Virus record (IMG/VR): IMGVR_UViG_3300028392_000029 | Coordinates: 62,001 to 126,000 of that record | Length of the DNA: 64,000 nt | Reading direction: 5' to 3' (one strand) | Shown here: in pieces, positions 983-41,848 of the stretch | Layout: each line of letters starts with the position of its first letter | Position numbering within the stretch: the first letter of the stretch is position 1 | The notes under the pieces: model-generated | Databases searched by the model: none | Seen by the model: the letters and a program-made list of their open reading frames with translations, nothing else | What the model was told of the DNA's origin: nothing | Position numbers and translations under genes: made by a program

Positions 983-995
983 AGTTATTTGCGCC

Positions 996-1751: not shown

Positions 1752-1769
1752 ATTATAATATTCTCCGGA

Positions 1770-2465: not shown

Positions 2466-2477
2466 TTTATATCCTTT

Positions 2478-9900: not shown

Positions 9901-12900
9901 TTTGTGTGTATGGGCTACGTGCGTAGATCCATGCGTTTGCATCGTTTGGACCAAACCCTGGATCTAAAGAACTGTAAGAGCCGGCTGTTGGACGTCTTGT
10001 TCCGTAAGCATTGGCAGCGCCTAGTGTTCCAGTTAAGCCAGTCATTGTCATGTTTCTTAAACCAGTACCGTTACGTAATAAGAACATGTTTTCTTTTACT
10101 GATCCGCCTACAGCGTTGTTATATAACTGTGCAGAACGTTGAGTTTTATAATTACCTGGGAAGTTTAAATCATAAACAATCGCATTTAAGTATGATGTAG
10201 TATCTCTAATGCAAGCTGGTACGCTGTATGCATACTTAACAGTTAAACTACCTAGAGTAGCTGTTGCTACTTGTGTTGGAACTAAACTAAATTGTGTTGA
10301 GGTAACAGCAAATGATGTTGAAGTTAAACCGGCAGCTAACACATAGTATGTATTACCGGCAACAATGTTACTAATTCCTACGGTTCCAGTAAACGTTACA
10401 GGATCGCCTACAACAAAGTTGTGATTACCTGTTGTTGTGATAAGGTATCCGGTACTGTTTGTACCTGATACAGTGCCGCCGTAGCTTGCATTAACATATG
10501 CAACAGATTCGTAAGCTAAGAAATTAATGTTAGCTCTGATAATTTCAGCACCGTTAATTGTAGATAGTGTGTTGTCATATGTTAAAGTGCCGTGTGTTTG
10601 TACAACAGCACCAATAGTCACTGCTACGCTAGTACTTGCCGCAGTTGTCAACGTAACCGCACTAACACTTCCGTACGTTGCTGTAATTGTAATCTGATTA
10701 GTTGTAGTATTAACGCTCAAGACCCAATAAGTTTGATTTTGTTGTGTACCGCCTTGGCTTCCGCTAGTAAACACTACTGGCATATTGACATAAACACCTG
10801 CAGTTGATGCAAGTGTTACTACGTTGCCTGAAGAATTAAATGCAGTTGCGGTAGTAGTTACTTGACCATAAATGGTAGACACAATATCATCAATCATCAC
10901 ACTTGCTTGTGCGGCTGCGCCACTGGCAGCAATTAATTTTGCTTTGTATCCAATAAATCCAATAGCACCAAGTTCTGCTTGTGTTTGATTTAATAATACT
11001 GTTTGAGCACTAGTAATTGCACGATAATATGATTTAGCAACAGTTATACTGTTAAAGTTAGTACCTAATACTAGGTCATATGCTAACGCATCAACAATAT
11101 AGCCAGCATCTCTATAACAAGTTGCAGTATTGAAGTTTAATGCTTGGAAATATTTTTGTACCCAAACAGTTGTATCACTTTGAATTTCTGTTTTCTTGTT
11201 TAGTAACGCATTGAACGCTGTCTGTAAGCTAGAACTGCTTAGTGCTACAGTACCTGCGTCATTTGGTGTAAATGCACCCTGTGTTCCAATTGCACTGCTA
11301 GCCACTGTTTGACTAACACTCACAGTCCATGTTGAACCATTACCAGATCCTGAAAGATTTGCAGTAATATAAGTTCCAGCGGCAACGCCTGCCCCAGTTA
11401 CTAACTGTCCAACAGCAATTGTACCGCTTACTAGGGTTCCAATTGTTAATGTAGTGCTTGATGGTCCAATAGTACTACCGGTTGTAGTTACTACGGTGCT
11501 AGTTGCGGCAGCATTAGTAACCCAATCAACAACGTTTTGAACTCTAGACTGTGCAAAAACTCCTGCAATAGAAGAACCAGCAGTTCCAGTTGTTACTTGT
11601 GTTGGGTATGCACCTGCAATTGCAATTGGCGATCCAACTGATCCAACTGTTTGACTAATGCTAACTGTCCAGTTAGAATTAATTGAGTTGTAGGCTGTAA
11701 CAATAGTATTTGAAGCAATACCAGCACCAGTAATTATTTGTCCAACTTGGATAGTACCAGATACTGTTGAACTTACATTCAATGCTGTTCCAACGATATA
11801 ACCAGTAATACTGGCATTAGTTGCTGTTTGAGATGTTACTAAAGTGCCAGTAGCAATTTGTCCAATGATAGTTTTTAACTGTCCGTAGGCTGCAATTGTG
11901 GCGGTTTTTTCTGTTGCGGCTTCTGTTAGTACACCGTATGAGTAATAAGCACTACCAGCAATATTAGTCTGTGTATTACCACCGTATGTCATATCGTGTA
12001 ATAATGCATCTAAAACATAACCTACGTCACGTTGGCAAATAGATACGTCTATTGCATTGTATACTGATAGGTAATTGTTGTAAATGTATTGACTAATTTG
12101 TGCTTTAATATAATTGTAATTTTGTACAATTTGTGCTTTAGCATCACCGTAACCAACTAAGAAACTTGTATTGTAACCTGTCGGGTTAGTGAATGAGTAT
12201 GCTGGTGCTAAAGCTAATCCATTACTAAAAATGTTAGACATCAGCGTTGTACTATTAATCACACTGTTTGCTGCCGCTGTACTTCCTGCATCACCTGCTG
12301 GAAGACTAGTAACTTGACTTGCAGTATTTCCACTAGTAGGTGTGATTGATGTATTTGAAACTAAATTACTTAACAATGCTTTAGTGCGTAATAGGGCTGT
12401 AACTGATTTTGGTTTATCATTTACTAAGGCAGCAACTGCACCGGCTGGCTGTATCACTGTGCCGCGAAGTTCGTCACCGCTAATAGCGGTATTAGCTGGA
12501 ACAACGATTGGAAGGATTTCGCTGTAGTTGCCGGTCTTGGCCATGATGGTTGTTTGTGGTAACTGCGCGGCTGATACTGTTACTCCTGGGAATAATGTAA
12601 ATGTTAATCCGGTAGTTGTTCCACCTACACCAACCGCAGTCACAGTACCCGCAACTGTTGGGCTAGAAGTAGCATTGGCGTAACTATTTGTTACTTGAAT
12701 TGTTGATACTGCTGTTCCACCTACCATAACATAGTAGATTGTATTGCTAGTAATAGTTCCAGTACCGGTATTTGTACCAGTAACTAAAATAGATGAACCA
12801 ACGGTATATGTTCCGCTTGGAACTGTTAGTTGTCCTGCGGTACCTGCGATAAGAACTCCACTTAACACTTTTCCTGAATTAGCTTGTAACGCTGTTGTAA

Positions 12901-15900
12901 CAATGCTTAAATTTGTTTGTACACCAGCTAACGATCCTGTTTCAGCAGTTAATGAGTTGTCAATAATTTGGTTTGCTTGGTTGCCTGAACTAATACCGTT
13001 TAATGCTTGATAGTTACTGCTAGGAGCAGTATTTCCTAATACTGCGGCAAACAATGAATTTTTCAAGTAGTTGTAGGCTGTAACACTTTGTGAAACTTGA
13101 TAGCCAAAAGTTGTAGTAATTGGATTGCCAGTACTATTGAAATATGATTTGGCGGCATCGGTGTTCTTTTGATTACCGCCGTGGCCAATATCAAATACTG
13201 CGGCATCTACTAAGAGGCCAACATCACGCTCGCATTTTGTTGAGTTGTATACTAGTGATGCTGTGTTTGCTGTACTAGTTGCTGACAATGCCTGTGTAGT
13301 TCCACCATAGGCAGCACTAACAGAGAAGTGAGTCGCATCAACAATGTTTGAAACATAATATGTAACGCCAGCAGTAACACCGCCAGCAGTAACAGTAAAT
13401 GTCATTGGCATGTATAGTGACAAATAAGCTGTTGAGTTGCAGGTAAATGTACTGTTGGTTCCTGTGCCTGGTGAGCCACCTGTTGTTGCTGTGATAGTAA
13501 CTGTATAGTTATAGATGATAAAGTTTGTAACTTCCTTCATCATGAACTGTTTATTTTTAGCCAATAATAATTGTGCGCTGGTATTTAGATAACCGTTTTC
13601 AACTTGCAAGGCTGCATATCGAACAGTCTGCCATGGCTTGTCAAGTGTTTGTCCTTGACCATTACCTAATGCATCAGTGCCTGAAGGTGCCACATACACT
13701 ACGTTATTGATAACTCCAAAATATGCCCACTGGGGGGTAAGTGATCCGCCTACTGTGGATGCACGTAAAACCTGTCCGTCAGTACCGATAGGTAGTCGAG
13801 CCGGGCCTGCACCACCGTAATAAATTGTATCGCCTTGTGTAGTTAGTACATTGGTAATAGAACCTACTGCTAACACGTTCCAATATGTACCAGTAGTGTC
13901 TGCGTCAGGTCTGTTGCCTGATGCGGCAACGTGTGCTGTTACACAGATGTAACTGTTAGATCCAAAATTAACAGTATCACCTGCTACATATGCTGTAGAA
14001 GATGCCCAGCTTACTGCATAACCAACAGATGTAATACCACCAGTTTGAATTACGCCACCCGATACATTAGTAACTGTGATTAATAAATCGTTAGCTGGAC
14101 TGATGCCACCTAGTGCAGTTCCTAAGATCTTGATAGTATTAGTATTTGCATAGCCAGTTCCGCCACTAGCTACTGTAACAGTATAGTTTGTATTACTTAC
14201 GATAACATTAAACGTTGCACTAGTTCCAGAACCAACAACGTTAGTTCCGCTCAGTGCTGAGAAAGTTTGTGTTGATGGGTTCCAACGAATACCGCTGTTC
14301 AATCGTGACCAGTAACCAGTAAATGGAGGACTTGGGTTTGTAGTTCCAGTCATTGAGCCAGACGCCGTTGTTACTGTAAACGGTGTACCGCCTGAAACTG
14401 TACTAACTGTAAATTGAGTAGCACTGATAATAGTACTAACATAATAGGTTTGTGTTGTAGCTACTATATTACCAAAAGTTGTTCCGGTAAACACTAAGGG
14501 TAAGTTTGGTAGTAGGTTAGCTGTTGATCCAACGGTGATAGCATTGATACTTCCAGTAACTGTAGTTGAACTTACTGCCTGGCTTGAACTAATTGTAAAA
14601 CTTTTACCGGTAATTGTTACTGAAGATACACCTGATTGAGTCTGATTAACAGTCCATGATGTACCGCTACCTGCGGTGATATAAGTTCCGGCACTGATGT
14701 TAGTACCAGTCACGACCATACCAATCGAGATTGTTCCGGTAATTGCACCAGCAATATTTAAAGACTGACCAGTAATACTAGCAGTAGCCATCGTAGCTGT
14801 ATTCACTGTTACAATCGTAGTATTTGCCGCAATACTGCCGCCGGATAGTGTCATACCTGCACTGAATGTACCAGTTTGAGTTCCAGCCGCGGTCATTGTT
14901 GTACCGCTAACAAATGTCGCAGTGTTTGACGCAGTTGTGTTAGTTGTTGCTGTTGCTGTAACTGTTTGTATTGAGTTGTCTAATGTTGCAACATAAGTAT
15001 ATCCGCCTAATCGAACAACGTTACCAGTTTGATATGATGTTGCACCAACCCAGTCACCTAATAGTGTAAATCCAGTTGTAAATATTGACCAATCACTTGA
15101 TGTAGGAGATGGAGTGCTGGCAGTATTAACTGTGTTTGACACATATTGATATCCGCCATAGGTTACTATATCTCCGTTTTGGTATGTAGTACCACTTGAC
15201 CAACTATTATAGAACTGTAAACCTGCAATCCATACTGCCCAATTGGCTGTGGCAAATGCCGCTGACGAAGTATGTTGTGTTGTACAGATCCATAAATCGG
15301 CACCGTACTTTACAACGTCGTTTATTTTATAACGAACTGTGCTGCCACTCCATGTGCCTAGATATGTTATACCTTTGTGTAAAAAGTCCCACTTGTTTTG
15401 ATCATTTTCTAAACCTAGACTTGCAGTGGCTGCAGAAGTGTGTCCGGCATTACATACATAAGAAATACCACCGTATAATACAATGTCATTTATTCTGTAT
15501 CGATATGATGTTGCCCAGTTGCCGGTCCAAGCAAGACCTTTAACCCAAATATCCCAGTTAGAGATATCGTTTTCTAAACCTAAGGCAGTAGTACTAGCGG
15601 ATGTGTGTGCAGTATTACAAATATATGAATTTGCGCCATAGTTAACAATATCGTTAACTTTGTATTTTGTACTAACAGCCCAGCCTGCTGAAACCCAGTT
15701 AAACGAACTAGCATATAAATCCCACTTGCTTTGATCGTTTTCTAATCCCAGTAGAGTTGTGGCTGCCGATGTGTGTGGAGTATTACAAATATAAAGACGA
15801 CCGCCGTAACTAATTACATCGCGTAATTTGTAATATGTACTAATAGCCCAGGCACCAGTCCATGTAGAGCCGTCGCTAACTAATTGCCAATTACCGGATG

Positions 15901-16057
15901 ATAAATCTGTATAAAAATTGGATGTTGCGGTATGCCCGAGGACACACATATAAGTTTGTCCGCCATAGCGTAACACGTCGTCTTTTACATAGGTAGTGGA
16001 TGCGCTCCAGTTACCCTGCCATACGAACTTAATTCTACCTAGTTTAAATTCAGCCAT
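3929..16057 (-). CDS. Giant modular tail fibre / adhesin-like virion protein (4042 aa)
   Basis: N-terminal W.G.W...T.Y..ND.V.YG..Y.C...HTS repeats (CBM5/12-like), YVAPSGTD beta-helix start, many Thr/Gly beta-modules, W..IAYG.G.FVAV propeller-like repeats; C-terminal RLTGHDFLSIGTG...TSTDQDGNF block shared with 16112..22000. Confidence 0.8.
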   Translation of the reverse strand: MAEFKLGRIKFVWQGNWSASTTYVKDDVLRYGGQTYMCVLGHTATSNFYTDLSSGNWQLVSDGSTWTGAWAISTYYKLRDVISYGGRLYICNTPHTSAATTLLGLENDQSKWDLYASSFNWVSAGWAVSTKYKVNDIVNYGANSYICNTAHTSASTTALGLENDISNWDIWVKGLAWTGNWATSYRYRINDIVLYGGISYVCNAGHTSAATASLGLENDQNKWDFLHKGITYLGTWSGSTVRYKINDVVKYGADLWICTTQHTSSAAFATANWAVWIAGLQFYNSWSSGTTYQNGDIVTYGGYQYVSNTVNTASTPSPTSSDWSIFTTGFTLLGDWVGATSYQTGNVVRLGGYTYVATLDNSIQTVTATATTNTTASNTATFVSGTTMTAAGTQTGTFSAGMTLSGGSIAANTTIVTVNTATMATASITGQSLNIAGAITGTISIGMVVTGTNISAGTYITAGSGTSWTVNQTQSGVSSVTITGKSFTISSSQAVSSTTVTGSINAITVGSTANLLPNLPLVFTGTTFGNIVATTQTYYVSTIISATQFTVSTVSGGTPFTVTTASGSMTGTTNPSPPFTGYWSRLNSGIRWNPSTQTFSALSGTNVVGSGTSATFNVIVSNTNYTVTVASGGTGYANTNTIKILGTALGGISPANDLLITVTNVSGGVIQTGGITSVGYAVSWASSTAYVAGDTVNFGSNSYICVTAHVAASGNRPDADTTGTYWNVLAVGSITNVLTTQGDTIYYGGAGPARLPIGTDGQVLRASTVGGSLTPQWAYFGVINNVVYVAPSGTDALGNGQGQTLDKPWQTVRYAALQVENGYLNTSAQLLLAKNKQFMMKEVTNFIIYNYTVTITATTGGSPGTGTNSTFTCNSTAYLSLYMPMTFTVTAGGVTAGVTYYVSNIVDATHFSVSAAYGGTTQALSATSTANTASLVYNSTKCERDVGLLVDAAVFDIGHGGNQKNTDAAKSYFNSTGNPITTTFGYQVSQSVTAYNYLKNSLFAAVLGNTAPSSNYQALNGISSGNQANQIIDNSLTAETGSLAGVQTNLSIVTTALQANSGKVLSGVLIAGTAGQLTVPSGTYTVGSSILVTGTNTGTGTITSNTIYYVMVGGTAVSTIQVTNSYANATSSPTVAGTVTAVGVGGTTTGLTFTLFPGVTVSAAQLPQTTIMAKTGNYSEILPIVVPANTAISGDELRGTVIQPAGAVAALVNDKPKSVTALLRTKALLSNLVSNTSITPTSGNTASQVTSLPAGDAGSTAAANSVINSTTLMSNIFSNGLALAPAYSFTNPTGYNTSFLVGYGDAKAQIVQNYNYIKAQISQYIYNNYLSVYNAIDVSICQRDVGYVLDALLHDMTYGGNTQTNIAGSAYYSYGVLTEAATEKTATIAAYGQLKTIIGQIATGTLVTSQTATNASITGYIVGTALNVSSTVSGTIQVGQIITGAGIASNTIVTAYNSINSNWTVSISQTVGSVGSPIAIAGAYPTQVTTGTAGSSIAGVFAQSRVQNVVDWVTNAAATSTVVTTTGSTIGPSSTTLTIGTLVSGTIAVGQLVTGAGVAAGTYITANLSGSGNGSTWTVSVSQTVASSAIGTQGAFTPNDAGTVALSSSSLQTAFNALLNKKTEIQSDTTVWVQKYFQALNFNTATCYRDAGYIVDALAYDLVLGTNFNSITVAKSYYRAITSAQTVLLNQTQAELGAIGFIGYKAKLIAASGAAAQASVMIDDIVSTIYGQVTTTATAFNSSGNVVTLASTAGVYVNMPVVFTSGSQGGTQQNQTYWVLSVNTTTNQITITATYGSVSAVTLTTAASTSVAVTIGAVVQTHGTLTYDNTLSTINGAEIIRANINFLAYESVAYVNASYGGTVSGTNSTGYLITTTGNHNFVVGDPVTFTGTVGISNIVAGNTYYVLAAGLTSTSFAVTSTQFSLVPTQVATATLGSLTVKYAYSVPACIRDTTSYLNAIVYDLNFPGNYKTQRSAQLYNNAVGGSVKENMFLLRNGTGLRNMTMTGLTGTLGAANAYGTRRPTAGSYSSLDPGFGPNDANAWIYARSPYTQNCTMFGYGCVGMKIDGALHAGGNRSIVANDYTTILSDGIGVWCTGSSSLTELVSVFCYYGYAGYLAELGGRMRATNGNSSYGTYGTLAEGGDTYEVAVTAAINNRSGQATVSNVFTDSTNAIYRMEFSNAGSGYNTATWSIGGTGYNATVVANEFRDNAVFETRPLTGGANYVTQSNVAQAGTLYQINLAATDSAISAAYIGMRILLTGGTGNGQAGYIVNYNSGTKLANVAKESFTTIVVNSCTTSVFTTTTNTSTLYANMPIYFSGASTFGGGNITPLTTVYYVIGASLSSNGTTFSVASASGSSSPVVLTSGSGTMTINAAGWDHVVPGTTNATNLDLTTTYIIEPRVVASAPGFVPSIGTQVLNSAGWADVAYGDTTVTYNSVSGTIGLGTGTLSSGSGATFSIVRTGVAYAITITTGGTLYTIGNTITIPGTSLGGVTPANNLVVTITNVNTGTGAITNFTYTGVGSGGYYVAITSNGNATQYSSDGTSWTTGGTLSSSTTWTAIAYGAGVWVAIAKGGTLSNYATTPLTWQASSAMPATANWSAIAYGNGRFMAVASGSANAAYSTVGQNWTNTNALPSGANWSGVAYGGTIWVAISGGVAGSTAAASSADGTTWTARTLPSSQNWTSVTYGKNIFVAVAASTTATAYSIDGITWKSSGAGMGVNLPWSRVKYGQGLFLAAPASQNQNITATTSITATFSGYISAVTGTSGTTGTVLTVTGSVVGTIALGMNLSGGGTQNGTYISSLGTGTGGVGTYNVSITNNVGTTGSPQAFVGVNNLITVSSTTGVVAGETFIPTAVTQTPTATATTNATATGSASTIATSVLTVGGTISGTWAVGMVVTGSASIPAGTYITSLGTGTGGAGTYNLSTTPGTVASFAATGTLNSITLSSVAGLVPGESFVTTSTQTASTVVSTAAGTSITLANSSTFDVGEPVVFTAATFNPVLLAAATGTNLLTVSSTSNLVVNQSIVFTAVTQTTTATATTSATATMTGSTIGATGILTVGTLTAGSLSIGMVLTGGSIGASVYITGNLLGSGSGSTWQTNTTTTQTSTTITGTLSSVTVGSTTGMVVGETYTSTAVTASTTATQTTTTSAVMANSSITSGILTVGTVSSGIVVIGMALSGSGVTAGTYVVANISGNGTSAGSQWAVSSSQTTNVSTTTITGTSYIVTVASNSNMVVGQSFATGSSGAFGNLANSATYYILTINSTFITISATPGGAPFVLINASGTVAITAGAALGGLVSGSTYYILTIPTSSTLTLGANYGSNPVSLINGVGSWNVTTGQTFSSVTAGTTYYITQVNSGSSTIQISATVGGSTLNLTTAAAGAWTSVAGGVLGGIVSGTQTYYVLTNNTGTGVITVATSYGGSAVTWALGAGAWAAGAGVSLGGPVATTGQVTAVGVNNGVITTTQTVSALGISVGSMIYFTNGSGTVFGGPTANTLYYVNSASTNSVTVATYSGGAGTGTAFTSWAGGTGTMNINVVSSGLITGVPYYILTVGSNYVTVGSTFGTAPVPITTSTGDSWSTACGTFFGNLVSTSTYYVQQVFSGTNQLQVSQTSTGSSFTLVSGAGGWTSTAGAATQVSASNDGINWVVQNLTSVASWPAIAFGNPSSVPLWVACSLNTTIFNKIVTGATATLRCKVSAGAISEYRLIEPGSGYSSAPLLTITDPNQTSPATQSTRVGVGAIANPMWTNRGLQYATGTATVSGNGYADSYQTTSYINISGLYVTPTAGANIQIAGNGSYYKLVQVSNLLGTGPGLAPYTAVFQISPSFTSANAPVHGSAMTLKLKYSQVRLTGHDFLSIGTGNQTTTNYPGTPLQAANPTLQTVGNGGGRVFYTSTDQDGNFQVGTLFSVQQATGVASINADAFNLAGLNSLTLGSISLGSSNATITQFSTDPYFTANSDNVVPTQKAIKSYISSQIGGGSSALNVNTLTAGVIYIAGNTISTTTQVQILVPATMNFTGAGAGINGIPLAMNFLLLN

Positions 16058-16111: not shown

Positions 16112-19100
16112 TTAGTTATTAGCACTAAAACTGTTGGCAAACAACGAATGTGCCAACATCATACCGTTGATACCTGCGTTTGGTCCTTTGATATTCACCG
16201 TGGCTTTCATCAAAATCTGTTGCCCAACACTTGAATATATTTTCTGCGATCCGCCAAGTCCTACCGTACCTGCAATAACTGCACCTGTTTGTGCATTTGA
16301 TCCGCCACCGGCAATGTTTCGTGCTAGGTATGCTTTAACAGCTTTTTGTGTCGGAACTACTGTGTCACTATTTGCAACAAAATATGTATCCGTTGAAAAA
16401 CTAGTAATTGTCACAGAGTTTGCACCTGCACTTAACCCGCCAATGACTAATTTTGTCAGTCCGGCTAGACTAAATTGATTAGCTGAAATTGTTACAATAC
16501 CGCTGGCCTGTTGTACTGCAAACAGATTACCGACTTTAAAGTTGCCGTCCTGGTCTGTTGATGTTTGGAATACTCGACCACTATTGTTTTCAGCAATTTG
16601 TTTATAACTGGCCGCGGTCAATGGGTCAACATTTGGATAGTTTGTCTGTGCTTTATTACCAGTACCGATGTACAAGAAATCGTGCCCCGTAATTCTACAC
16701 TGGCTATATTTTAATCGAATACTAATAGTTGTCCCGTGGACTGGTGCTAGACTAATTGTTAATGCGGCTGCAATTTGGAAAAGATAGTTTCCACTACCTA
16801 ACGGAGTTATAACTACGACTCGGTATAAATTATTATTTCCGCTGATAGTTATGGCCGCTCCCGGAGTTGGGGATTGTGACAACCCACTGACATATAGATA
16901 CTGACTAGATTGCAATTGGTCGGCATAGCCGTCACCATTGACTGCAACTGTCGTAGTTGATGTTTGATAACCATTACCTCGGTTGAGGAATGTAGGATTA
17001 CCTAATACTCCTGTGGCTGTGCGGCATGCAGTTGTCACGGCTAGTGTTGCATTAGGATCATATATAGTAACTGTTGGAGTAGTGGCATAGCCGCCTCCTG
17101 GCTCATATATCTTTACCATACTGACTTTGCTATTAGCTACAATCACTCGTCCAATAGTAGTTGGTCCGGTAAGTACACTGGCAGCAGTGTTTGACGCTGT
17201 ACCGGCAATTGCCGTCCAAATTGGTGTAACTGCTCCGGCTATGCTTGTAGGATTTCCAAATGCTACAGCTGACCAAGGAGCACTTGTTGGCATTATCTGC
17301 GGGGTCCAATATAATCCATCTTGACTAGTGGCCGCTGTGCTGGTATTGGCCGCAACTGCAAAAAATAAACCTTGCCCGTATGTCACGGCTGTCCATGTCT
17401 GCGTACTAGGTAGAGCGTTTATTGTCCAAGTAATACCATCAAAGGAATATGCTGATTGATTTGTTTGGTCAATCGCTACAAATCTACCGTTACCCCATGT
17501 TACTGATATCCATGTACTGCTAGCTGGCAATGTACAAGGTGTCCATAGACTGCCGTTGTTAGTAGAATAAGCGGCATTGGCTGTTCCGGAAGCGACTGCA
17601 ACCCATGTACCAATAGATCCATATGCTATACTAGACCAGTTTCTTGAAGTCGGTAATGATCCGCCGTTAGCCCATGAAGTTCCACTAGTTGATGTAGCCG
17701 AATATGTGCTACCGTATGCAATCGCTACAAATGTCCCGTTACCAAATGCACAAGCTGACCAGTTGGCTGCAACCGGCAGTGTGCCACCTGCACTCCATGA
17801 TGCACCAGTATTTGATATACTTGTTAAATTACTTGAAGATGCGCCGCCTGCGACTGCTACAAAAAATCCTTGCCCAAATGCTAACGAAGTCCACGCTGTG
17901 CCGGCTGCCAGTGCTGTGGGATTCACAGTTGCTGCCAGCCAATTTTTACCGTCTGTAGATGTTGCCACACTACTCACTTGATCAATTGCAACAAATGTTC
18001 CTAATGCATAAATCATTGCGGCCCAAGTACTAGTTGATGGTAGTACTTGTAGTGTTCCTGTAAATCCGGGTGATGAAAAACTTACTTTTGGTTCAATGGA
18101 ATATACTGTGGTTGTATCAAGAGCCGGTGCAATAGGTTGCCCAGGCAGGATATTGTCAAAACCTACAGCTCCAATGTACGAGTTGCCATTGGCGGTATAC
18201 ACCGGAACTGGAACTCCTGCATATGTCCATGTGCCAGTTACTGAAGTTAGTGTGGCTTGACTTAAAGTAACAGTACTGATACCAGTACCTAATACTGTAG
18301 TACCTGCTTGTATTCCGGGGCCTGTTACAGCGCCACCTACAATAATACCAACTGTGCTGGCAATACCGCTGATGGTCTGTGTACTGTTACTTGTTCCAGT
18401 AAATGTTCCTGGTGCAGTCGCAGATAAAGTAATTTGATTCGTAAGAGTATTGTTAGTCAAGACCCAATAAGGTGTTCCCCAGCCAAGTGTTCCAATTACT
18501 CCCTGAGCAGTCGCTAACATGTTAGCAGTACCAGCATAAGTAGAGATATTTAAAATAGTACCAGTACCACCTAAACTAGTAGGTAATGCTGTTGAAATCT
18601 GAATTTTAGATCCGTTGATTGCATAAACAAAATAGCTAGTTCCGGGACTTACTCCGCCAAAGATAGTATTAAATGTCGGATTAACTGCAAATATAATGTT
18701 TTCTCCTACAAATATTCCCGATACACTTGCTAGTGTAAGACTATTGTCAACACTACTTGATGCAGTTACTGATGTAGTTTGTGTACTAGGCCCAAACATA
18801 ATGGCCTGTCCTACTTGTAAAGTGCTAGTAGATAAACATGTTACTGAATTGTTTGCATTACTTGTAGAGGTAACTGTTACTTGCGGGAAACTTTCTCTAC
18901 TAATATATGCGGCTTTTGTACTACTGTTATAATATTGTATATAGCCGTACTGCCCAACTCCTGTACCCGAAGTAATAATTAATCGCATACCAAAATATGT
19001 GGAAATAAGGTTCTGGTCGTTTGATGCTAATGTAACGTAAGTATTGGTGCCGCCGCCGGCTTGATTACCTGCTGTTAAGTAGCCGGCACCGCCAGCTGTT

Positions 19101-22000
19101 ATATCAGTGGGCCCAATAATTCTAGCTTCAAAGATGCCGCCATCTCTAAACTCATCGGCAACTGCAACTGCACCTGTACCAGCACCACTAAATGTATAGG
19201 TTGCTGTTGAATAATTTTGTCCGGCATTAGAGAATTCTAATCTAAGAATTTTGTTATTTGCTTGGCCGGCAAAGGCTGCTTGAATTTGAGCTTGTTGGCT
19301 ACGATTATTAACTGTTGCGGCTAGCGGGACTTCGGTAGTGTCATATCCTTCAGCAACTGTTCCATATGTGCCATACGAACTATTACCGTTGGTAGCACGA
19401 ATTCTTCCACCGGCCTCTGCTAGATATCCAATATGTCCATAATAGTTAAACACTGATACTAGTTCTGTTAGTGCGCTAGGGCCTGTACACCATGCGCCAA
19501 TTCCATCGCTAATAACTGTGGTAAAATCGTTAGCCACGATTGATCGATTGCCACCGTTATGCAGTGTACCGTCAATCTTTACACCGGTACATCCGGTACC
19601 AAACATCGTAACGTTTTGCGCATAAGGAGATTTGCTGGTAATTTGTACACTAGTATCATTTGGTCCGGATCCGGGATCTAAACTAACAAATGCTCCGCCA
19701 GTTGGACGTGAAGTGAGATATTGATTAATTGGTGTAAGGCCGCCAGTCAATCCTTGTAAGGTCATATTTCTAATGCCTGTGCCGTTACGACAAAGGAACA
19801 TATTAGATCCTTCGTAGCCGGCTGCTGGTTGCACCACTGTACCGCGTAGTTCATCGCCGCATAGCGCAACACCTGCTGGAATACTGATTGGAAGAATTTC
19901 AGTATAAGTTCCAGTCTTAATAAAAATTGTAGCAGGTCCGATAACGTTTGCACAAGCATAACGGATGCTAGCCCAAGGTGTATTCACAGTTGTTCCACGA
20001 GTAGGTAAATCAATTCCACTCATAGCAACATAATATACAGCACCAATAATACCAAAATTATTCCAAGCCGGGGCAATATTTGTGTTATCAACTACACCAT
20101 TGGTAACTGCCGCAGTTGCACGAAGTAGTTGTCCTTGTGTACCTATTGGTATCGCTTTATTAGCAGTACCGTAAGTTGGTATATCGCCATAAGTCTGGAT
20201 AGCTACCCATTGGTCTCCAGCGGCGTATCTGTTCCAATAGATTGATGCATTTTGTATAGACCCGCCTGTGGTAAATCCTGTAGCTAATGTTTCAAAACTA
20301 GCTGTAGTATTAGTACAGGTTATTACTGTATATGTTCCGTTGTAAGCTGTTGGGGTTGTGTTTGATACAATGATTAAATTTCCTGGAGTATACGGGCTAT
20401 TAGCTTGTGTAGGGAAGGTAACTGTTCCCACACCGGTTACTGTTGGGGTAGCAGTGAAGGTTGTTCCAGATAATGTCAGTGTTCCAAAATTAATGTCAGC
20501 AGTACCAAGTGCTCCAAGATATGTTGATGCTAGTGCAATTGTTGTACCATCAATAATATTACCAATATAATAAGTACCAGCTGTTAATGCTCCTGCTCCT
20601 GTACCTGCTACTACAAAAGTTTCACCTATGTGTAGTCCTGTTGATGAACTAACTGTAACATTTACTCCACTGGTTGCAGTGATACTTCCTGTGCGAGTTG
20701 TTAATGCTCCAGTACCCAAAGCACCGGTGATCATCAACGACGTAAATGTATTATCGATTAACGGTGTATTACTTGTAGTTGCATTATGTAATTGTTTGCA
20801 AACATATGCTGTGCCATTGTAAGTAACAAGGTCGCCTGGAGCATATGATGTGGTCAATGCCCAGGTATTTCTCCACTGTACACCAGGAATTAATAATTGC
20901 CATGCCGATGTATCAGTGGGATCATTACCGGTGTTATCAGCAATTGCAACATAAAGTTGCCCATCACGACGTACAATCTCACCTACTTTATATCCCGGAG
21001 TTGGACTTGCTACATATTCACCTCTGATATTGTAACTCTTAGATAAAAGAGTCCAATCGGTTGCATCAGTTGACGGAATGTTACCTTGATTATTTGTAGT
21101 TGCGCTTACATACTGATATCCGCCGTACACTACAACATCGCCAACTACATATGATGCACTAACACTCCAAGTACTAGAAAATTCTAAACCAGGAACATAT
21201 ATTGAAAAATTTGTTGTGCTAAAAGTAGTAGTTGAAGTATGAGGAATGTTACAAAACCAAAGATCTGCACCGTACTTGACTATGTCGTTAAGTTTGTAAC
21301 GAGTCACTGATGCCCAGTTAGTTTTAAAATCTATACCACTATGTACTATAGTCCACTTGCTTTGATCAACTTCTAATCCAGACGATACAGATACATTGCT
21401 AGTGTGTCCAGTGACACACTTGTACACTATGCCGCCGTAACGGACTACATCACCTACTTTATATTGAACACTAGTCGACCAATCTGTTTTCCAATCTGAA
21501 CCGTAGCTGACCACAGCCCAGTTTGATTGATTTGCTTCTAGCGTAGCGCCTGTTTGGTGTCCGGTAAGGCAACGATATAACGTTGAGCCGTAGCGAACAA
21601 TGTCGCCCTTTTTAAATCTAGCACTGGCTGTCCAATTTTTAGACCATTCATCAGCTAGAGCGTATATAATCCAGTTTGCTTGATTTGCTTCAAGTCCTAG
21701 TAGTGCTGTTGCCGCAGAAGTGTGCCCAGCGGTACAAATATAAATTACACCACCGTAGGTAACATAATCGCCAATGTTGTATAGGGTACCTACAGCCCAA
21801 ACACCTTTCCATGTGTATCCATCAAACCATAAAGTCCAGTTGGCCGAATCTGTATAAAAATTTGCGCTGGCAGTGTTAGCCGATGTACACACATAGGATT
21901 TTCCACCGTAGTTTATTACATCGTCTTTAGCATACACTGTGCTGGTTGTCCAAACACCGCGCCATGTAAATCGTATTCTACTTATTTTAAAATCAGCCAT
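16112..22000 (-). CDS. Modular tail fibre / adhesin-like virion protein (1962 aa), paralogue of 3929..16057
   Basis: Same N-terminal repeats (MADFKISRIRFTWRGVW vs MAEFKLGRIKFVWQGNW), same NRSIVANDFTT..SDGIG.WCTG core and C-terminal block. Confidence 0.8.
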   Translation of the reverse strand: MADFKISRIRFTWRGVWTTSTVYAKDDVINYGGKSYVCTSANTASANFYTDSANWTLWFDGYTWKGVWAVGTLYNIGDYVTYGGVIYICTAGHTSAATALLGLEANQANWIIYALADEWSKNWTASARFKKGDIVRYGSTLYRCLTGHQTGATLEANQSNWAVVSYGSDWKTDWSTSVQYKVGDVVRYGGIVYKCVTGHTSNVSVSSGLEVDQSKWTIVHSGIDFKTNWASVTRYKLNDIVKYGADLWFCNIPHTSTTTFSTTNFSIYVPGLEFSSTWSVSASYVVGDVVVYGGYQYVSATTNNQGNIPSTDATDWTLLSKSYNIRGEYVASPTPGYKVGEIVRRDGQLYVAIADNTGNDPTDTSAWQLLIPGVQWRNTWALTTSYAPGDLVTYNGTAYVCKQLHNATTSNTPLIDNTFTSLMITGALGTGALTTRTGSITATSGVNVTVSSSTGLHIGETFVVAGTGAGALTAGTYYIGNIIDGTTIALASTYLGALGTADINFGTLTLSGTTFTATPTVTGVGTVTFPTQANSPYTPGNLIIVSNTTPTAYNGTYTVITCTNTTASFETLATGFTTGGSIQNASIYWNRYAAGDQWVAIQTYGDIPTYGTANKAIPIGTQGQLLRATAAVTNGVVDNTNIAPAWNNFGIIGAVYYVAMSGIDLPTRGTTVNTPWASIRYACANVIGPATIFIKTGTYTEILPISIPAGVALCGDELRGTVVQPAAGYEGSNMFLCRNGTGIRNMTLQGLTGGLTPINQYLTSRPTGGAFVSLDPGSGPNDTSVQITSKSPYAQNVTMFGTGCTGVKIDGTLHNGGNRSIVANDFTTVISDGIGAWCTGPSALTELVSVFNYYGHIGYLAEAGGRIRATNGNSSYGTYGTVAEGYDTTEVPLAATVNNRSQQAQIQAAFAGQANNKILRLEFSNAGQNYSTATYTFSGAGTGAVAVADEFRDGGIFEARIIGPTDITAGGAGYLTAGNQAGGGTNTYVTLASNDQNLISTYFGMRLIITSGTGVGQYGYIQYYNSSTKAAYISRESFPQVTVTSTSNANNSVTCLSTSTLQVGQAIMFGPSTQTTSVTASSSVDNSLTLASVSGIFVGENIIFAVNPTFNTIFGGVSPGTSYFVYAINGSKIQISTALPTSLGGTGTILNISTYAGTANMLATAQGVIGTLGWGTPYWVLTNNTLTNQITLSATAPGTFTGTSNSTQTISGIASTVGIIVGGAVTGPGIQAGTTVLGTGISTVTLSQATLTSVTGTWTYAGVPVPVYTANGNSYIGAVGFDNILPGQPIAPALDTTTVYSIEPKVSFSSPGFTGTLQVLPSTSTWAAMIYALGTFVAIDQVSSVATSTDGKNWLAATVNPTALAAGTAWTSLAFGQGFFVAVAGGASSSNLTSISNTGASWSAGGTLPVAANWSACAFGNGTFVAIAYGSTYSATSTSGTSWANGGSLPTSRNWSSIAYGSIGTWVAVASGTANAAYSTNNGSLWTPCTLPASSTWISVTWGNGRFVAIDQTNQSAYSFDGITWTINALPSTQTWTAVTYGQGLFFAVAANTSTAATSQDGLYWTPQIMPTSAPWSAVAFGNPTSIAGAVTPIWTAIAGTASNTAASVLTGPTTIGRVIVANSKVSMVKIYEPGGGYATTPTVTIYDPNATLAVTTACRTATGVLGNPTFLNRGNGYQTSTTTVAVNGDGYADQLQSSQYLYVSGLSQSPTPGAAITISGNNNLYRVVVITPLGSGNYLFQIAAALTISLAPVHGTTISIRLKYSQCRITGHDFLYIGTGNKAQTNYPNVDPLTAASYKQIAENNSGRVFQTSTDQDGNFKVGNLFAVQQASGIVTISANQFSLAGLTKLVIGGLSAGANSVTITSFSTDTYFVANSDTVVPTQKAVKAYLARNIAGGGSNAQTGAVIAGTVGLGGSQKIYSSVGQQILMKATVNIKGPNAGINGMMLAHSLFANSFSANN

Positions 22001-27860: not shown

Positions 27861-28883
27861 TTAAGCGTTATCGATCAACAATGAATCTGCTGTGGCTGCA
27901 GACATGTTCCACTTGACTTGTGATCCATCTACAAAAGCCGCATCTGTTCCAGTGCCACGTGCAATTGTAACTTTGCGTGATGTAATCTTGGTAGCAAAGT
28001 ATGTATAGCCAGCAGAGTCAAGTAAACGGATACTGCCTTCGCCAGCCGCTGAAGCAACTGAAGACTTCAATGCAACGATGCCTGTACGTGTACCGTCTGT
28101 TACTTTGAAACGATTTGTTGAAACTTGTTTAAGAATATCAACAGTAGTTGCTGAACCACCAGTTAAGTATGCTGTCATTAAGATTGTATTTTCTTGGTTA
28201 GTTGCTGAACCAACATTGCCAGTATCTACATTCAATACTGCTGTGGCTGTTAATGTGCCTTGTGTACCAGTTGACAATGTAACTGCCGGCACTGTTGTAT
28301 AACCAGAACCGCTTTCAGTAATTGTGAATCCAGTAATTGTACCTGCGGCTGCAACTGAACCACCTAATGTGATTGTTAAATCGTTTGTTGTAGCAACACC
28401 GCCTAAGCTAGCACCATCAATAACAATAGTGTTACCTGAAGCATAGCCTGTACCTTTAGTAGTACAAGTGATAGTTGTGCTTGCACCATAGCTTGTGCCA
28501 CCAGTACGTACAACTGTAAACACAGCACTAGTACCAGTACCGTTTGTTGATTTTTGTGTTAGGCCAGTAAAAGTCTGTGTTACTGCTACTGCTGTACCTG
28601 AACCAGTTAATGTTGTTACGTTAGTGCCAGATGTACCAGCGGCAATAGTTAACAATGCACCTGCTGGGCCTACTACTAAACTAGCTGTTGCACGAACACC
28701 ATTTGGTAGTGTTGGAGTTGCAATACTGATTTGTGATGCACCTGCTGTAAAACCTGATGAGTTGTTAGCACCAGCCAATGTGATACTTGCAATCCCTTCA
28801 CCGCCGATACCTTCATCAGTTGTAGTGCTTGCGGAACCGACGTTACGGTTACCAAAATATTTCTTATTTAAAGGACGTCCCAT
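27861..28883 (-). CDS. Virion structural protein (340 aa, Thr/Gly-rich)
   Basis: MGRPLNKKYFG start, ITESGSGYTTVPAVT repeat typical of T4-like structural proteins; AAGGAG RBS and TATAAATA upstream. Confidence 0.65.
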   Translation of the reverse strand: MGRPLNKKYFGNRNVGSASTTTDEGIGGEGIASITLAGANNSSGFTAGASQISIATPTLPNGVRATASLVVGPAGALLTIAAGTSGTNVTTLTGSGTAVAVTQTFTGLTQKSTNGTGTSAVFTVVRTGGTSYGASTTITCTTKGTGYASGNTIVIDGASLGGVATTNDLTITLGGSVAAAGTITGFTITESGSGYTTVPAVTLSTGTQGTLTATAVLNVDTGNVGSATNQENTILMTAYLTGGSATTVDILKQVSTNRFKVTDGTRTGIVALKSSVASAAGEGSIRLLDSAGYTYFATKITSRKVTIARGTGTDAAFVDGSQVKWNMSAATADSLLIDNA

Positions 28884-28970
28884 TTTGTTTTCTCCTTGTA
28901 GAAAAACGGCGTTCTAGGCCGTACGCGGTTGGATTTCCGCATAAAATCCACACCATGTGGATCATACATT
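28884..28970 (-). promoter_or_regulatory. Structured 5' leader of 27861..28883 with a terminator-like hairpin before the RBS
   Basis: Minus strand: AUCCACA-UGG-UGUGGAU; UAUGCGG-AAAUCCAA-CCGCGUA; ACGGC-CUAGAAC-GCCGU-UUUU; then AAGGAG. Confidence 0.5.
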
Positions 28971-28971
28971 G

Positions 28972-28979
28972 TATTTATA
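28972..28979 (-). promoter_or_regulatory. T4-type late promoter TATAAATA
   Basis: Exact consensus upstream of 27861..28883; further minus-strand TAAATA boxes in intergenic gaps at 3591, 16084, 24367, 33745, 34060 and 40925. Confidence 0.7.
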
Positions 28980-29721
28980 CGTAAGTGATTCGCATAGCTA
29001 CGTTGTCAATATATGCCGTATCAGTGTGTGGTGTAAGAACGTTGCTTCTAAAGGCTATTGCAACACCAAAGTTTACGTTAATTGTATCTATTAACTGTAT
29101 TGGACTATTCCATAAGTTTGTAGGAGATCCATAAATTTTATAGTTGTCTACTCCAGGATCTGCAATATTATCGCCGACTAGTTGTCCGTTTAGAACTAGT
29201 TGCACAACATAGTCTTGAACTCTAGATGCTCTGATAGAATCTATTTGAACTTCAATCCCCAGCAATGTTGATCCGTTGGGAGAAAATGCAAAGTTAGTAA
29301 ACCATAACTGGCTGGTTATTGTGGCAAATCGCTCTTGCCATAGACCTGATATTGTATGTAAAGGTTTAGCACTAGTGGCATACTTTGACACACCTCTACC
29401 AATGCTGGCTGCTGTATCTAGCCAGCTTATACTGTTATCCGTACTTACTTGAGTTACCAAGTTTGAAACAAGAAATTTGGTAGTTGTTGGTATAGGTGCT
29501 GGCGGTACTACCAGCACTGTTAGTACTAGTACTGAAAGTTTTTGAATATTATAATCATCTAATGTTCGACCAGGTTCTAAAATAGTACCATTGTAAGTTA
29601 ATTGTGGTTGTCCGGCAGGTGGACCTATTCTATCCTGTATTTTTGCTAGGACTCCTTCGATAGAATCAGAAGACTCTACATCAATTGTGATAGTAGACGG
29701 TACCTGAACAAATATTTGCAT
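28975..29721 (-). CDS. Ubiquitin-like domain (aa 1-~68) fused to a virion-type beta-sandwich domain; possible capsid decoration protein
   Basis: MQIFV...[21 protein letters not shown]...[14 protein letters not shown]: 40 of 76 positions identical to canonical ubiquitin in my manual alignment; no LRLRGG; Pro-rich linker; located directly after the major capsid gene. Confidence 0.85.
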
Positions 29722-29739
29722 AATAAATTCCTGTTAGTA

Positions 29740-29745
29740 TATTTA
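29740..29745 (-). promoter_or_regulatory. Late promoter box (TAAATA) for the ubiquitin-fusion gene
   Basis: Minus strand reads GGTAAATATACTAACAGGAATTTATTATG; it lies between the capsid terminator and the start codon. Confidence 0.6.
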
Positions 29746-29752
29746 CCCAAAG

Positions 29753-29804: not shown

Positions 29805-30980
29805 TTACTGGAACTTAACGTTACCTGAAGTAATACCAACTAGACCTAAATAGTCAGCGGCGTTACCTAAGCTACTTGCTGTGTTCGACAACTCAACATA
29901 ACCATAACGTGTCATGAATGATACGACTGGCTCAAATGTTGATGGATCTAAAACAACACCACTGCTCATCAATGGAATGTATGGGCAATAGAAAGCAGGA
30001 GCATCAGATTCTGAAGAACCTTTGTAACCTACTAGGATGCTTTGTGAATCGCTAGCATATGAGTTAACATATACTTTCATAGCATTGTTCAATGTACCAA
30101 CAAACTTAGTGTTTGTAGGTGCTTCGAATGTACCTTCTGTTGTACGAGCAAATGCGCTAGTAGTAGCAGATTGTAGAATTGTCAATGCAAATGGGCTAAC
30201 CACAGCGTAGTTACCAGCACCACGACGTGTACGTTGAGCGATCAAGTTAGCAACGCGGTTGATCATAACTGCCAAGGCAGCATGCTCATCACCCACGAAT
30301 GTTGCTGTACCAGATACTGACGCTTGGTCGTATGTGTATAAAGCTGAACCAGCTAATGATTGTAGGCTAGCTAGAATCTCTTGGTCGATCTCAGCAGTAA
30401 TTTCTTGTGCTAGAGCAGCCATGATTTCAGCTTCTACGTCAATACCTTGTTGTGCTTGTGCATCTTGAGCTGATTCAAATGTCCAGCGAGCTGACAATTT
30501 ACGTGTCTTCGCTTCAACAGTTTGTTTCAAGATTTGAATGCTTAATCTGTTACCAGCTTGACCTTCTAAAGTAGCTGTTGAGCTAGCCTTAGGAGTTGCG
30601 TCAGTTGTGTTACCAGAGTAAGAAGCCGCAATCTTGAATGGGCTCAATGCCTCTTCACCAGCTACTACACCAGCGCCCGATGATGAATCAGCGTAGCGAA
30701 CACGTAGAGTGTGAATTTGTCCTACTGGACCAGTCATTGGTTGTACGCCTAACAACTCGTTAGCAATAACGGTTGGCATTACGCGGCGGATTACTGGAAG
30801 AATCACGCGATTTAGTGTTGCAACGTTACCGGCAGAAGTGGCACCAGCAGTAGCGGATTCTGCAAGATACTTACGAGTATTCTCAAGAGCCACGCCCATT
30901 ACTGATTTTTTAGTGCCTGATAGGCCTTCTAAAAGTGCTTCTTTAGTTTCTGCCCAACGTCCGTTTAATAGTTCTGACAT
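29805..30980 (-). CDS. gp23: Major capsid protein (T4 gp23-like)
   Basis: LPVIRRVMPTVIANELLGVQPMTGPVGQI, VEAKTRKLSARWTFESAQD, AFYCPYIPL, FMTRYG motifs. Confidence 0.95.
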   Translation of the reverse strand: MSELLNGRWAETKEALLEGLSGTKKSVMGVALENTRKYLAESATAGATSAGNVATLNRVILPVIRRVMPTVIANELLGVQPMTGPVGQIHTLRVRYADSSSGAGVVAGEEALSPFKIAASYSGNTTDATPKASSTATLEGQAGNRLSIQILKQTVEAKTRKLSARWTFESAQDAQAQQGIDVEAEIMAALAQEITAEIDQEILASLQSLAGSALYTYDQASVSGTATFVGDEHAALAVMINRVANLIAQRTRRGAGNYAVVSPFALTILQSATTSAFARTTEGTFEAPTNTKFVGTLNNAMKVYVNSYASDSQSILVGYKGSSESDAPAFYCPYIPLMSSGVVLDPSTFEPVVSFMTRYGYVELSNTASSLGNAADYLGLVGITSGNVKFQ

Positions 30981-41416: not shown

Positions 41417-41848
41417 TTATTGAGCCTTGAGTATATGTGAACCATGTACACGCACTTGAATATGACCGTTATAATAGTCATTTGATTCTAGTACACGACG
41501 ACTAAATTGTTCACGAGCCTCTACGTATGAGCATTCTGCTTTGGATTTACAGTAAAAAAGTATTTCTCTTGTGAAGTTTGCTGTGCCTAATTCCGCAATA
41601 TCTTTGCTTAGTTCAGGCGACGATCCGTAATATTCACGCCAGTCTGAATCAATTTTACTGCGAATTTTCTTCTTTTTCTTTGTGCCGTTTTTAAGCGTTA
41701 CTGTTTTTGTGGTAGTTTTAGAGAATTTTGCTAATTTTTTGCCTATGTACTTACGTCCAGACAGTGTGTTAGTAATTAGATAAACATATCCTACACAATC
41801 TTCCGGTAACACTTCCACTAGTTGATTTTCATAAGTCCATGACATCAA
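41417..41848 (-). CDS. GIY-YIG endonuclease (T4 EndoII/DenA-like size)
   Basis: GYVYLITN...RKYIGKK, YYGSS, FTREIL, YVEAREQF, YYNGHI motifs; Lys-rich insertion TKTVTLKNGTKKKKKIRSK. Confidence 0.85.
   Translation of the reverse strand: MMSWTYENQLVEVLPEDCVGYVYLITNTLSGRKYIGKKLAKFSKTTTKTVTLKNGTKKKKKIRSKIDSDWREYYGSSPELSKDIAELGTANFTREILFYCKSKAECSYVEAREQFSRRVLESNDYYNGHIQVRVHGSHILKAQ

Follow-up and report, generated by a model that had tools for sequence, protein, structure and literature searches.

Why should a late structural gene of a bacteriophage begin with a ubiquitin domain? The question is raised by a stretch of 64,000 nucleotides (positions 62,001 to 126,000 of IMG/VR virus record IMGVR_UViG_3300028392_000029; hereafter the window), which is the structural region of a freshwater jumbo myovirus of the T4-core clade. 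Directly behind the gp23-type major capsid gene lies an intact open reading frame (ORF; 28975-29721, minus strand) whose 248-residue product joins an N-terminal domain of the ubiquitin family to a beta-sandwich, referred to here as the body. We found that the ubiquitin head is an optional cassette, that it lacks the features by which ubiquitin serves as a modifier, and that its nearest relatives are bacterial. In our best explanation, to which we assign a probability of roughly 0.55 as a whole, a bacterial-derived cassette is displayed on the virion by the body and serves there as a non-covalent accessory tip.

A ubiquitin-family domain fused to a late structural-module protein

Residues 1-68 form a genuine ubiquitin-family domain with a beta-grasp fold. 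Pfam family PF00240 matched residues 4-68 at 46.5 bits (E=3e-12; curated gathering threshold, 25.4 bits), and a phmmer search of the PDB aligned residues 1-68 to positions 1-70 of ubiquitin (E about 7e-15) with a single two-residue gap, located in the beta1-beta2 loop. Identity to canonical ubiquitin is 41/70, and for some eukaryotic variants it reaches 43/70. An AlphaFold2 model of the fusion protein, built on 45 family members, had a mean predicted local distance difference test score (pLDDT) of 92.7, and Foldseek superimposed its N-terminal domain on ubiquitin chains with template modelling scores, TM(target), of 0.84-0.92 and root-mean-square deviations of 1.7-1.9 Å. An earlier sequence-only reading of this DNA had counted 40 identities over 76 positions with one two-residue gap, had expected the N-terminus to model as a beta-grasp, and had assigned it to ubiquitin rather than to beta-grasp proteins of the ThiS, MoaD or Bil type; the searches and the model bear out all of this.

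The protein starts with MQIF, with no preceding signal peptide, and contains no cysteine. As had been described, a VPPAPIP linker and a beta-rich C-terminal domain of about 170 residues follow the ubiquitin domain; the linker ends in IP and runs into a conserved TTT motif. The AT-rich composition reported for the gene was also confirmed, the ubiquitin segment having a GC content of 36% (17% at third codon positions), equal to or below that of the neighbouring genes.

Along the coding strand, gp23 is followed by a hairpin and then a GTAAATA box, after which an 18-nt leader containing the ribosome-binding site AGGA runs up to the ATG (Table 1). The gene therefore does sit behind the capsid terminator with a TAAATA box and ribosome-binding site, and as an in-frame fusion to a late structural-module protein, as first proposed. 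A hairpin occupies the corresponding position in 8 of 8 aligned loci, with a stem of varying sequence. The GTAAATA 7-mer is not enriched in the window, and its significance comes from conservation across loci, not from counts; by its resemblance to the late promoters of T4 we regard it as a putative late promoter.

The identical 248-residue protein was found on 13 contigs from at least six samples and several assemblers (JGI 3300028392, 3300010885 and 3300010334, and the independent Sequence Read Archive assemblies SRR5754829, SRR5211153 and SRR5754827), the longest of which, at 223,176 bp, is the record from which the window was taken. In total there are nine distinct fusion variants (P0001, P0004, P0021, P0093, P0149, P0151, P0154 and the products of loci L028 and L029), and every fusion with available flanking DNA sits directly behind gp23. 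The fusion gene is real, in frame and under selection, and the assembly chimera that the sequence-only reading had named as grounds for refutation does not apply.

An exchangeable cassette maintained by selection

The ubiquitin head is encoded by a cassette of about 250 bp that is optional and that co-circulating phages have gained, lost and exchanged by recombination in conserved flanks, these being the terminator/GTAAATA region on one side and the Thr-Thr-Thr codons on the other. A fused and an unfused locus (L028 and L098, respectively) are approximately 99% identical through the end of gp23, the hairpin, the GTAAATA box, the body gene and the downstream leader, apart from one clean indel of about 240 bp that starts right after GTAAATA and stops where the TTT motif is encoded (ACT-ACT-ACA). 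Exchange is evident in L029, which combines a window-type backbone with the cassette of L010, the L010 hairpin included. Between L010 and L029 the nucleotide identity is 98% in ubiquitin and 50% in the body, and between the window and L010 the corresponding values are 94% and 51%. The cassettes fall into two types with about 50% protein identity and a common leader, TAAATA-TACT-A/T-AC-A/T-GGAA. On a tree of body domains the presence of ubiquitin requires at least five changes, and each fused lineage has a closer relative without ubiquitin (the window protein is sister to P0002, with 100/99 support).

The ratio of nonsynonymous to synonymous substitution rates (dN/dS) for ubiquitin within type 2 is 0.11-0.28, at a dS of about 0.8-1.3, and therefore the domain is kept by selection. 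For the body, dN/dS is 0.08 where dS is measurable.

Loss of the features of a modifier

Alignment of the nine phage variants showed that the Gly-Gly end is missing from all of them, together with R42, R72 and R74, and that a hydrophobic, Pro-rich linker has taken the place of the Gly-Gly tail. In all nine, L8 is deleted from a shortened loop, I44 is replaced by T or K and V70 by T, I or Q, and the identity of H68 is also lost. Of the linkage lysines, K48 is never kept (T, L, Q, R or H) and K63 is retained in type 1 only. Without the Gly-Gly, the tail arginines or the L8/I44/V70 patch, the domain is not a modifier. Judging from these residues, it can be neither activated by E1 nor released by deubiquitinases (DUBs), and standard ubiquitin receptors would not be expected to read it.

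Origin of the cassette

The ubiquitin domain of the window is 63-66% identical to bacterial ubiquitin domains and 58-61% identical to eukaryotic ubiquitin. One relative (P0284) is encoded on a 47.6-kb chromosomal contig of a Curvibacter sp. metagenome-assembled genome (MAG), another (P0227) joins ubiquitin to an IPTL-CTERM sorting domain (TIGR04174, 46.3 bits; cutoff 20.5), and others, on Bacteroidota-like contigs, consist of a signal peptide, ubiquitin and a hydrophobic tail. In a maximum-likelihood tree of 100 domains, the phage and bacterial sequences formed one group apart from 83 eukaryote-type sequences, with weak support (bootstrap 54, Shimodaira-Hasegawa-like approximate likelihood ratio test [SH-aLRT] 93), and type 1 paired with Curvibacter-type proteins (95/86). 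A larger tree, with 57 bacterial genome sequences added, was a bush in which the pairing of type 1 with the Curvibacter-type proteins alone kept its support (SH-aLRT 89) and the eukaryotes stayed on one side. A single phage clade, and thus a common origin of both types, was not rejected by the approximately unbiased test (p=0.39). The phage and bacterial domains have the derived substitutions T22S, R42Q/I, I44T, Q49V/I and V70T in common. In addition, phage linkers such as SVPTTT and PIPTTT look like the beginning of a sorting motif found in the bacterial proteins, (S/I)VPT(L), and therefore the fusion junction may lie inside such a motif, a likeness that extends over four residues only.

When one genome of each GTDB species was scanned, 499 bacterial or archaeal loci with a eukaryote-type ubiquitin domain were identified. 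About six of the best 80 look like eukaryotic polyubiquitin contamination; most of the others have a signal peptide, ubiquitin right after the predicted cleavage site, and a tail without Gly-Gly. Proteins of this layout come from Pseudomonadota, Bacteroidota, Verrucomicrobiota, Planctomycetota, Actinomycetota, Bacillota and further phyla, with complete chromosomes among their sources. The bacterial carriers (loci L101-L180) include an autotransporter beta-barrel, IPTL/PEP-CTERM-like tails, arrays of immunoglobulin (Ig) domains and an S-layer domain. Pfam searches identified the arrangement signal peptide, ubiquitin, autotransporter beta-domain (PF03797) in Methylotenera, a Burkholderiales MAG, a Comamonadaceae MAG, Luteolibacter, Novipirellula and Iodobacter, and a ubiquitin, NHL propeller and S-layer arrangement in Arcobacter. 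The Curvibacter-type gene (L100:8001-8354), whose product is the closest bacterial relative, encodes no signal peptide and keeps the Gly-Gly at the canonical end, followed by a hydrophobic PEP/IPTL-like tail.

Since the nearest relatives are bacterial and such domains are widespread on bacterial surface proteins, direct capture of the gene from a eukaryote, as the sequence-only reading had assumed, appears unlikely. According to this alternative, the phage took ubiquitin from a protist grazer or its virus and mimics it toward eukaryotic machinery. The 58-61% identity to eukaryotic ubiquitin is in keeping with such a capture, as are an ESSD-IEGV stretch that the window variant has in common with some eukaryotic variants and the free ubiquitin genes on giant-virus contigs from similar kinds of samples. 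However, the bacterial domains are closer, the phage domains fall outside the eukaryotic cluster, and type 1 goes with a Curvibacter-type protein. The substitutions in common with bacterial proteins and the linker that begins like (S)VPT(L) also argue against it, and the patch and tail that ubiquitin receptors read are gone. Of the PF00240 search and donor phylogeny that had been suggested for residues 1-70, the first bore out the family assignment and the second made a eukaryotic donor less likely. The best reading of the route is from eukaryote to bacteria to phage, bacterial surface proteins being the probable immediate source of the cassette.

The body domain and its late gene block

The sequence-only reading had suggested searching the C-terminal domain alone for relatives without ubiquitin, and these were readily found: 76 IMG/VR loci encode a body domain, of which 4 have ubiquitin and 72 do not. 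Among body clusters at 90% identity, ubiquitin is present in 6 of 51, or 7 of 52 if P0093 is counted. Most body relatives are stand-alone proteins of 171-175 residues that start M-(I/T)-T-T-x-F. In 63 of the 72 loci with enough flanking DNA, gp23 lies directly upstream of the body gene, and conserved genes for proteins of 340, 320, 102 and 351 residues lie downstream. Therefore, the body gene belongs to the core of a late block that is conserved (gp23, body, 340, 320, 102 and 351 residues) in freshwater jumbo T4-core myoviruses. The body evolves fast, with 33-45% identity among loci, whereas gp23 is far more conserved (phmmer E about 1e-220 to 1e-249). One of the loci with a body gene and a T4-type gp23 (L026, IMGVR_UViG_GVMAG-S-404869-41_000001) is a 145-kb contig labelled as a giant-virus MAG that looks like a mis-binned jumbo phage.

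In the alleles without ubiquitin, the ATG follows the invariant TAAATA box by 4 nt, with no clear ribosome-binding site (L098:136-151, L099:37-52, L007:5988-6003), and these alleles may be transcribed as leaderless late mRNAs.

A profile search of 1.84 billion representative sequences returned 3896 body relatives. These include stand-alone proteins of 165-200 residues, and the C-terminal 115 residues or so of the body are repeated inside proteins of 500-3964 residues that also have Ig, cadherin or He_PIG domains. None of 145 distant family representatives, of 150 listed, carries ubiquitin. Some body proteins have loop insertions of 100-250 residues (P0143-P0146, P0161; L055, L089, L095, L097); modules are thus added to the sandwich at two hot spots, this loop and the N-terminus.

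A Foldseek search of the PDB with the full model was swamped by ubiquitin, so a second model, of a relative without ubiquitin, was needed. This model (pLDDT 86.6) is a jelly-roll sandwich that weakly resembles carbohydrate-binding modules. In BFVD, the structural matches of the body included uncharacterised Caudovirales proteins and an archaeal virus tail protein. The body profile had no match among PDB sequences, the module does not recur elsewhere in the window, the giant ORFs described below included, and no homology to the decoration families Hoc, Soc, gpD and pb10 was detected in Pfam, PHROG or PDB sequences. Taken together, the features of the body fit a surface-exposed virion protein, on capsid or fibre.

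Proposed role and alternative explanations

We propose that the cassette descends from bacterial ubiquitin domains at the distal N-terminus of exported surface proteins, such as autotransporter passengers and IPTL/PEP-CTERM-anchored proteins, and that a Burkholderiales-like host lineage is its probable source. The beta-sandwich would dock on the virion, at the capsid or a fibre, and the ubiquitin fold, carried outward by the Pro-rich linker, would form an accessory tip that binds or shields. Such a tip would work through non-covalent surface contacts, not ubiquitination, and would do the same job as on the bacterial surface. Since the downstream genes are fibre-like, association with a fibre is as possible as decoration of the capsid.

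Several observations weigh against this explanation or limit it. Display on the virion surface is plausible, and the case for it consists of the adjacency to gp23 and the late-promoter-like box. The body matched no family in Pfam or PHROG, and comparison of its profile with the genes downstream of the capsid gene in phages PA5oct and Phosso by hhalign detected no homology. The model without ubiquitin gave weak matches in the PDB, to carbohydrate-binding modules (E about 1e-3, TM 0.3-0.47), so no firm functional call can be made for the body. With regard to origin, the ubiquitin tree is built on 72 columns and type 2 has no settled position in it. The Curvibacter-type gene is GC-poor (59% in the ubiquitin segment, compared to 69% at its locus), and transfer between phage and the Curvibacter lineage could therefore have run either way. 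Finally, the Pfam scan that detected no E1, E2 or JAB/DUB genes covered the ORFs of the window, whose 64 kb belong to a contig at least 223 kb long.

Alternatively, the domain could serve the beta-sandwich solely in cis and inside the infected cell, as a tag that folds quickly and aids solubility or expression, much as in the ubiquitin-ribosomal protein fusions; the cassette would then matter mainly for the leader and ribosome-binding site that it supplies. Proteins with ubiquitin fused to their N-terminus are obtained in higher yield and are more soluble, and the cassette does bring an 18-nt leader with AGGA to a gene whose ubiquitin-less alleles start just past TAAATA with no obvious ribosome-binding site. 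We nevertheless consider this improbable, because most phages of the clade do without the cassette, and because a tag would explain neither purifying selection over the whole domain in two types that have diverged by 50% nor the parallel with the surface-tip architectures of bacteria.

The sequence-only reading had also suggested a decoy for bacterial ubiquitin-like antiphage conjugation systems, which would here be of the Bil or Cap2 type, or an effector resembling the BfUbb protein of Bacteroides fragilis, which would be antibacterial. The general theme alone speaks for either role: one report describes bacterial ubiquitin-like systems that modify phage structural proteins (10.1101/2023.09.26.559546), and BfUbb is an example of a toxic ubiquitin made by a bacterium (PMC5705921, PMC11467351). 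However, a domain with no free C-terminus and no Gly-Gly cannot enter E1, the ubiquitin-like proteins (Ubls) of the Bil and Bub systems are far from PF00240-type ubiquitin, and E1, E2 and JAB genes were not found in the window. As for an effector, the protein is not free-standing, has no signal peptide, and lacks a cysteine for the C-terminal disulfide of BfUbb (PMC11467351). Neither suggestion is upheld, and we give them very little credence. An assembly chimera or mis-called ORF can be dismissed, as no supporting point was found and the recurrence of the exact protein across contigs, samples and assemblers, the nine homologous variants under purifying selection and the phage-like composition all contradict it.

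Comparison with known ubiquitin-related systems

The preferred explanation, a virion-surface tip of bacterial derivation, can be set beside several known systems. The phage domain resembles BfUbb and BoUbb of Bacteroides in being a PF00240-type domain in a prokaryotic setting, with about 60% identity to ubiquitin, no use as a conjugated modifier, and a site of action outside the cytoplasm, which for the phage domain is proposed (PMC3352274, PMC5705921, PMC11467351). However, BfUbb is secreted as a free-standing toxin of about 76 residues that has a signal peptide and requires its C-terminal disulfide, whereas the phage domain is permanently fused to a larger protein, at its N-terminus, and there is neither signal peptide nor cysteine.

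The bacterial ubiquitin-tip surface proteins are the nearest sequence relatives of the phage domain. They have ubiquitin at the distal or mature N-terminus, a hydrophobic or Pro-rich linker in place of Gly-Gly, and the substitutions listed above. They differ in possessing a Sec signal peptide and an envelope anchor; the phage protein has neither, and in it a phage beta-sandwich acts as carrier. Compared with the phage domain, the bacterial ones are also closer to canonical ubiquitin.

Eukaryotic viruses likewise encode ubiquitin-family domains (baculovirus v-ubi, entomopoxvirus and giant-virus ubiquitins, and pestivirus polyprotein inserts), and ubiquitins of eukaryotic viruses were the structural matches of the N-terminal domain in a Foldseek search of BFVD. 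The hosts of these viruses have a ubiquitin system and many of the viral proteins keep RLRGG, in contrast to the tail-less phage domain, which is fused to a structural-module protein. On giant-virus contigs, a substantial fraction of the ubiquitin genes end before the Gly-Gly.

The Ig-like display domains of T4 Hoc offer a parallel, which we infer, for an optional, outward-facing, fast-evolving and exchanged small domain on a late structural protein near the capsid gene. There is no relationship in sequence or fold between the phage fusion, whose place on the virion is putative, and Hoc, Soc or gpD. With the prokaryotic Ubls (ThiS/MoaD, Bil/Bub and the tail-assembly Ubl of the lambda gpI type), some of which are linked to phages, the domain has the beta-grasp in common. 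The sequences of these proteins lie very far from it, and they function together with E1 or JAB partners, whereas the phage domain passes PF00240 and has no partner enzymes in the window. A ThiS/MoaD-type Ubl was ruled out by the PF00240 match above cutoff and by the 57-66% identity to ubiquitin-type sequences.

Features of the locus and neighbouring genes

Table 1. Coordinates in the window of the fusion gene's parts and of the elements that flank it
Feature	Position	Strand	Evidence
Freshwater-2 RNA motif (RF02980), apparent leader of the next gene (27861-28883; 340 aa)	28881..28962	-	75.9 bits (Rfam gathering score, 49.9 bits)
Beta-sandwich body of 170 residues, aa 79-248	28978..29487	-	Stand-alone product in most related phages
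Hydrophobic Pro-rich linker, aa 69-78, replacing the RLRGG tail	29488..29517	-	Alignments
Ubiquitin-family domain, aa 1-68	29518..29721	-	PF00240, PDB ubiquitin match, AlphaFold2 and Foldseek
Ubiquitin cassette (18-nt leader with AGGA, ATG, ubiquitin, linker)	29488..29739	-	L028/L098 indel; window/L029/L010 swap
GTAAATA box, T4-late-promoter-like, left edge of the cassette	29740..29746	-	Invariant columns in alignment
Palindromic GC-rich terminator-like hairpin, after the gp23 stop codon	29753..29776	.	Seen in the window
gp23-type major capsid protein gene, directly upstream of the fusion	29805..30980	-	PF07068, E=3e-96

The window contains genes for a portal, a prohead protease, a scaffold and gp23, followed by fibre-like genes, among them the two giant ORFs described below and ORFs that resemble tail-fibre chaperones. 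It also contains baseplate genes (gp5, gp25 and gp53-like) and Rad50/Mre11-like genes. Its gp23 is 68-73% identical to gp23 of the jumbo phages Phosso, Vibrio 2.275.O, CBB, GAP32 and PA5oct. Megablast and tblastn searches of the locus against the INPHARED phages returned no match, and thus no cultured relative with the gene.

The freshwater-2 motif follows directly after the stop codon of the fusion gene and a TAAATA box, and precedes the gene for the 340-residue protein. It occurs in the corresponding place in 10 of 18 related loci (L007, L010, L022, L025, L028, L038, L047, L055, L062 and L088) and is better conserved than the flanking coding DNA. It is an orphan Rfam motif of the cis-regulatory kind. 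Position and conservation thus mark freshwater-2 as the apparent leader of a structural gene in jumbo phages.

A second RNA motif, Polynucleobacter-1 (RF01718; 41249-41392, minus strand, 74.3 bits), adjoins an ORF for a SegE-like GIY-YIG endonuclease (41417-41848). Its listing under "Burkholderiales, fresh water/estuary" (PMC2864571) provides a weak hint of a Burkholderiales-type host. Elsewhere in the window, two giant ORFs on the minus strand (3929-16057, 4042 residues, and 16112-22000, 1962 residues) have five CBM_5_12 repeats each and probably encode very long fibres. Four tandem ORFs of 231-252 residues (224-3233, minus strand) are possibly paralogous fibre chaperones; one of them has a weak match to PF16778 (phage tail assembly chaperone) at 24.9 bits, below the cutoff of 26.6.

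Significance for phages and bacterial surface proteins

Ubiquitin-family genes are known from eukaryotic viruses and a few strains of Bacteroides. Searches of 50,697 GenBank phage records by tblastn, with a eukaryote-type ubiquitin and with the fusion protein, gave no match, and the other top ubiquitin matches in IMG/VR were free-standing genes on giant-virus contigs, not fusions. Our literature search returned BfUbb/BoUbb and the bacterial Ubl defence systems and no report of a phage ubiquitin; nor did it return any report of ubiquitin-autotransporter or ubiquitin-IPTL/PEP-CTERM surface proteins. No ubiquitin in a tailed phage turned up in the records searched apart from the one described here, which is a selected cassette with presence/absence polymorphism, not a stray capture.

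The results also indicate that bacterial surface proteins with a ubiquitin tip, present in hundreds of species and many phyla, form a class that has been overlooked. Their range is far wider than the literature on BfUbb would imply, in which, as late as 2018, B. fragilis was called the sole bacterium with a ubiquitin homologue (PMC6194340). More tentatively, and at well below even odds in our estimate, ubiquitin, once transferred from eukaryotes, may now be a widespread extracellular tip module of prokaryotes that jumbo phages use as an exchangeable virion-surface cassette. In that case it would mediate a specific interaction, either with protist grazers or with whatever partner the bacterial ubiquitin-tip proteins have on the host surface, and this would affect the adsorption of the phage or the survival of its particles. 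Together, the phage cassette and the bacterial tip proteins make testable the question of what a non-conjugatable ubiquitin fold does outside the cell.

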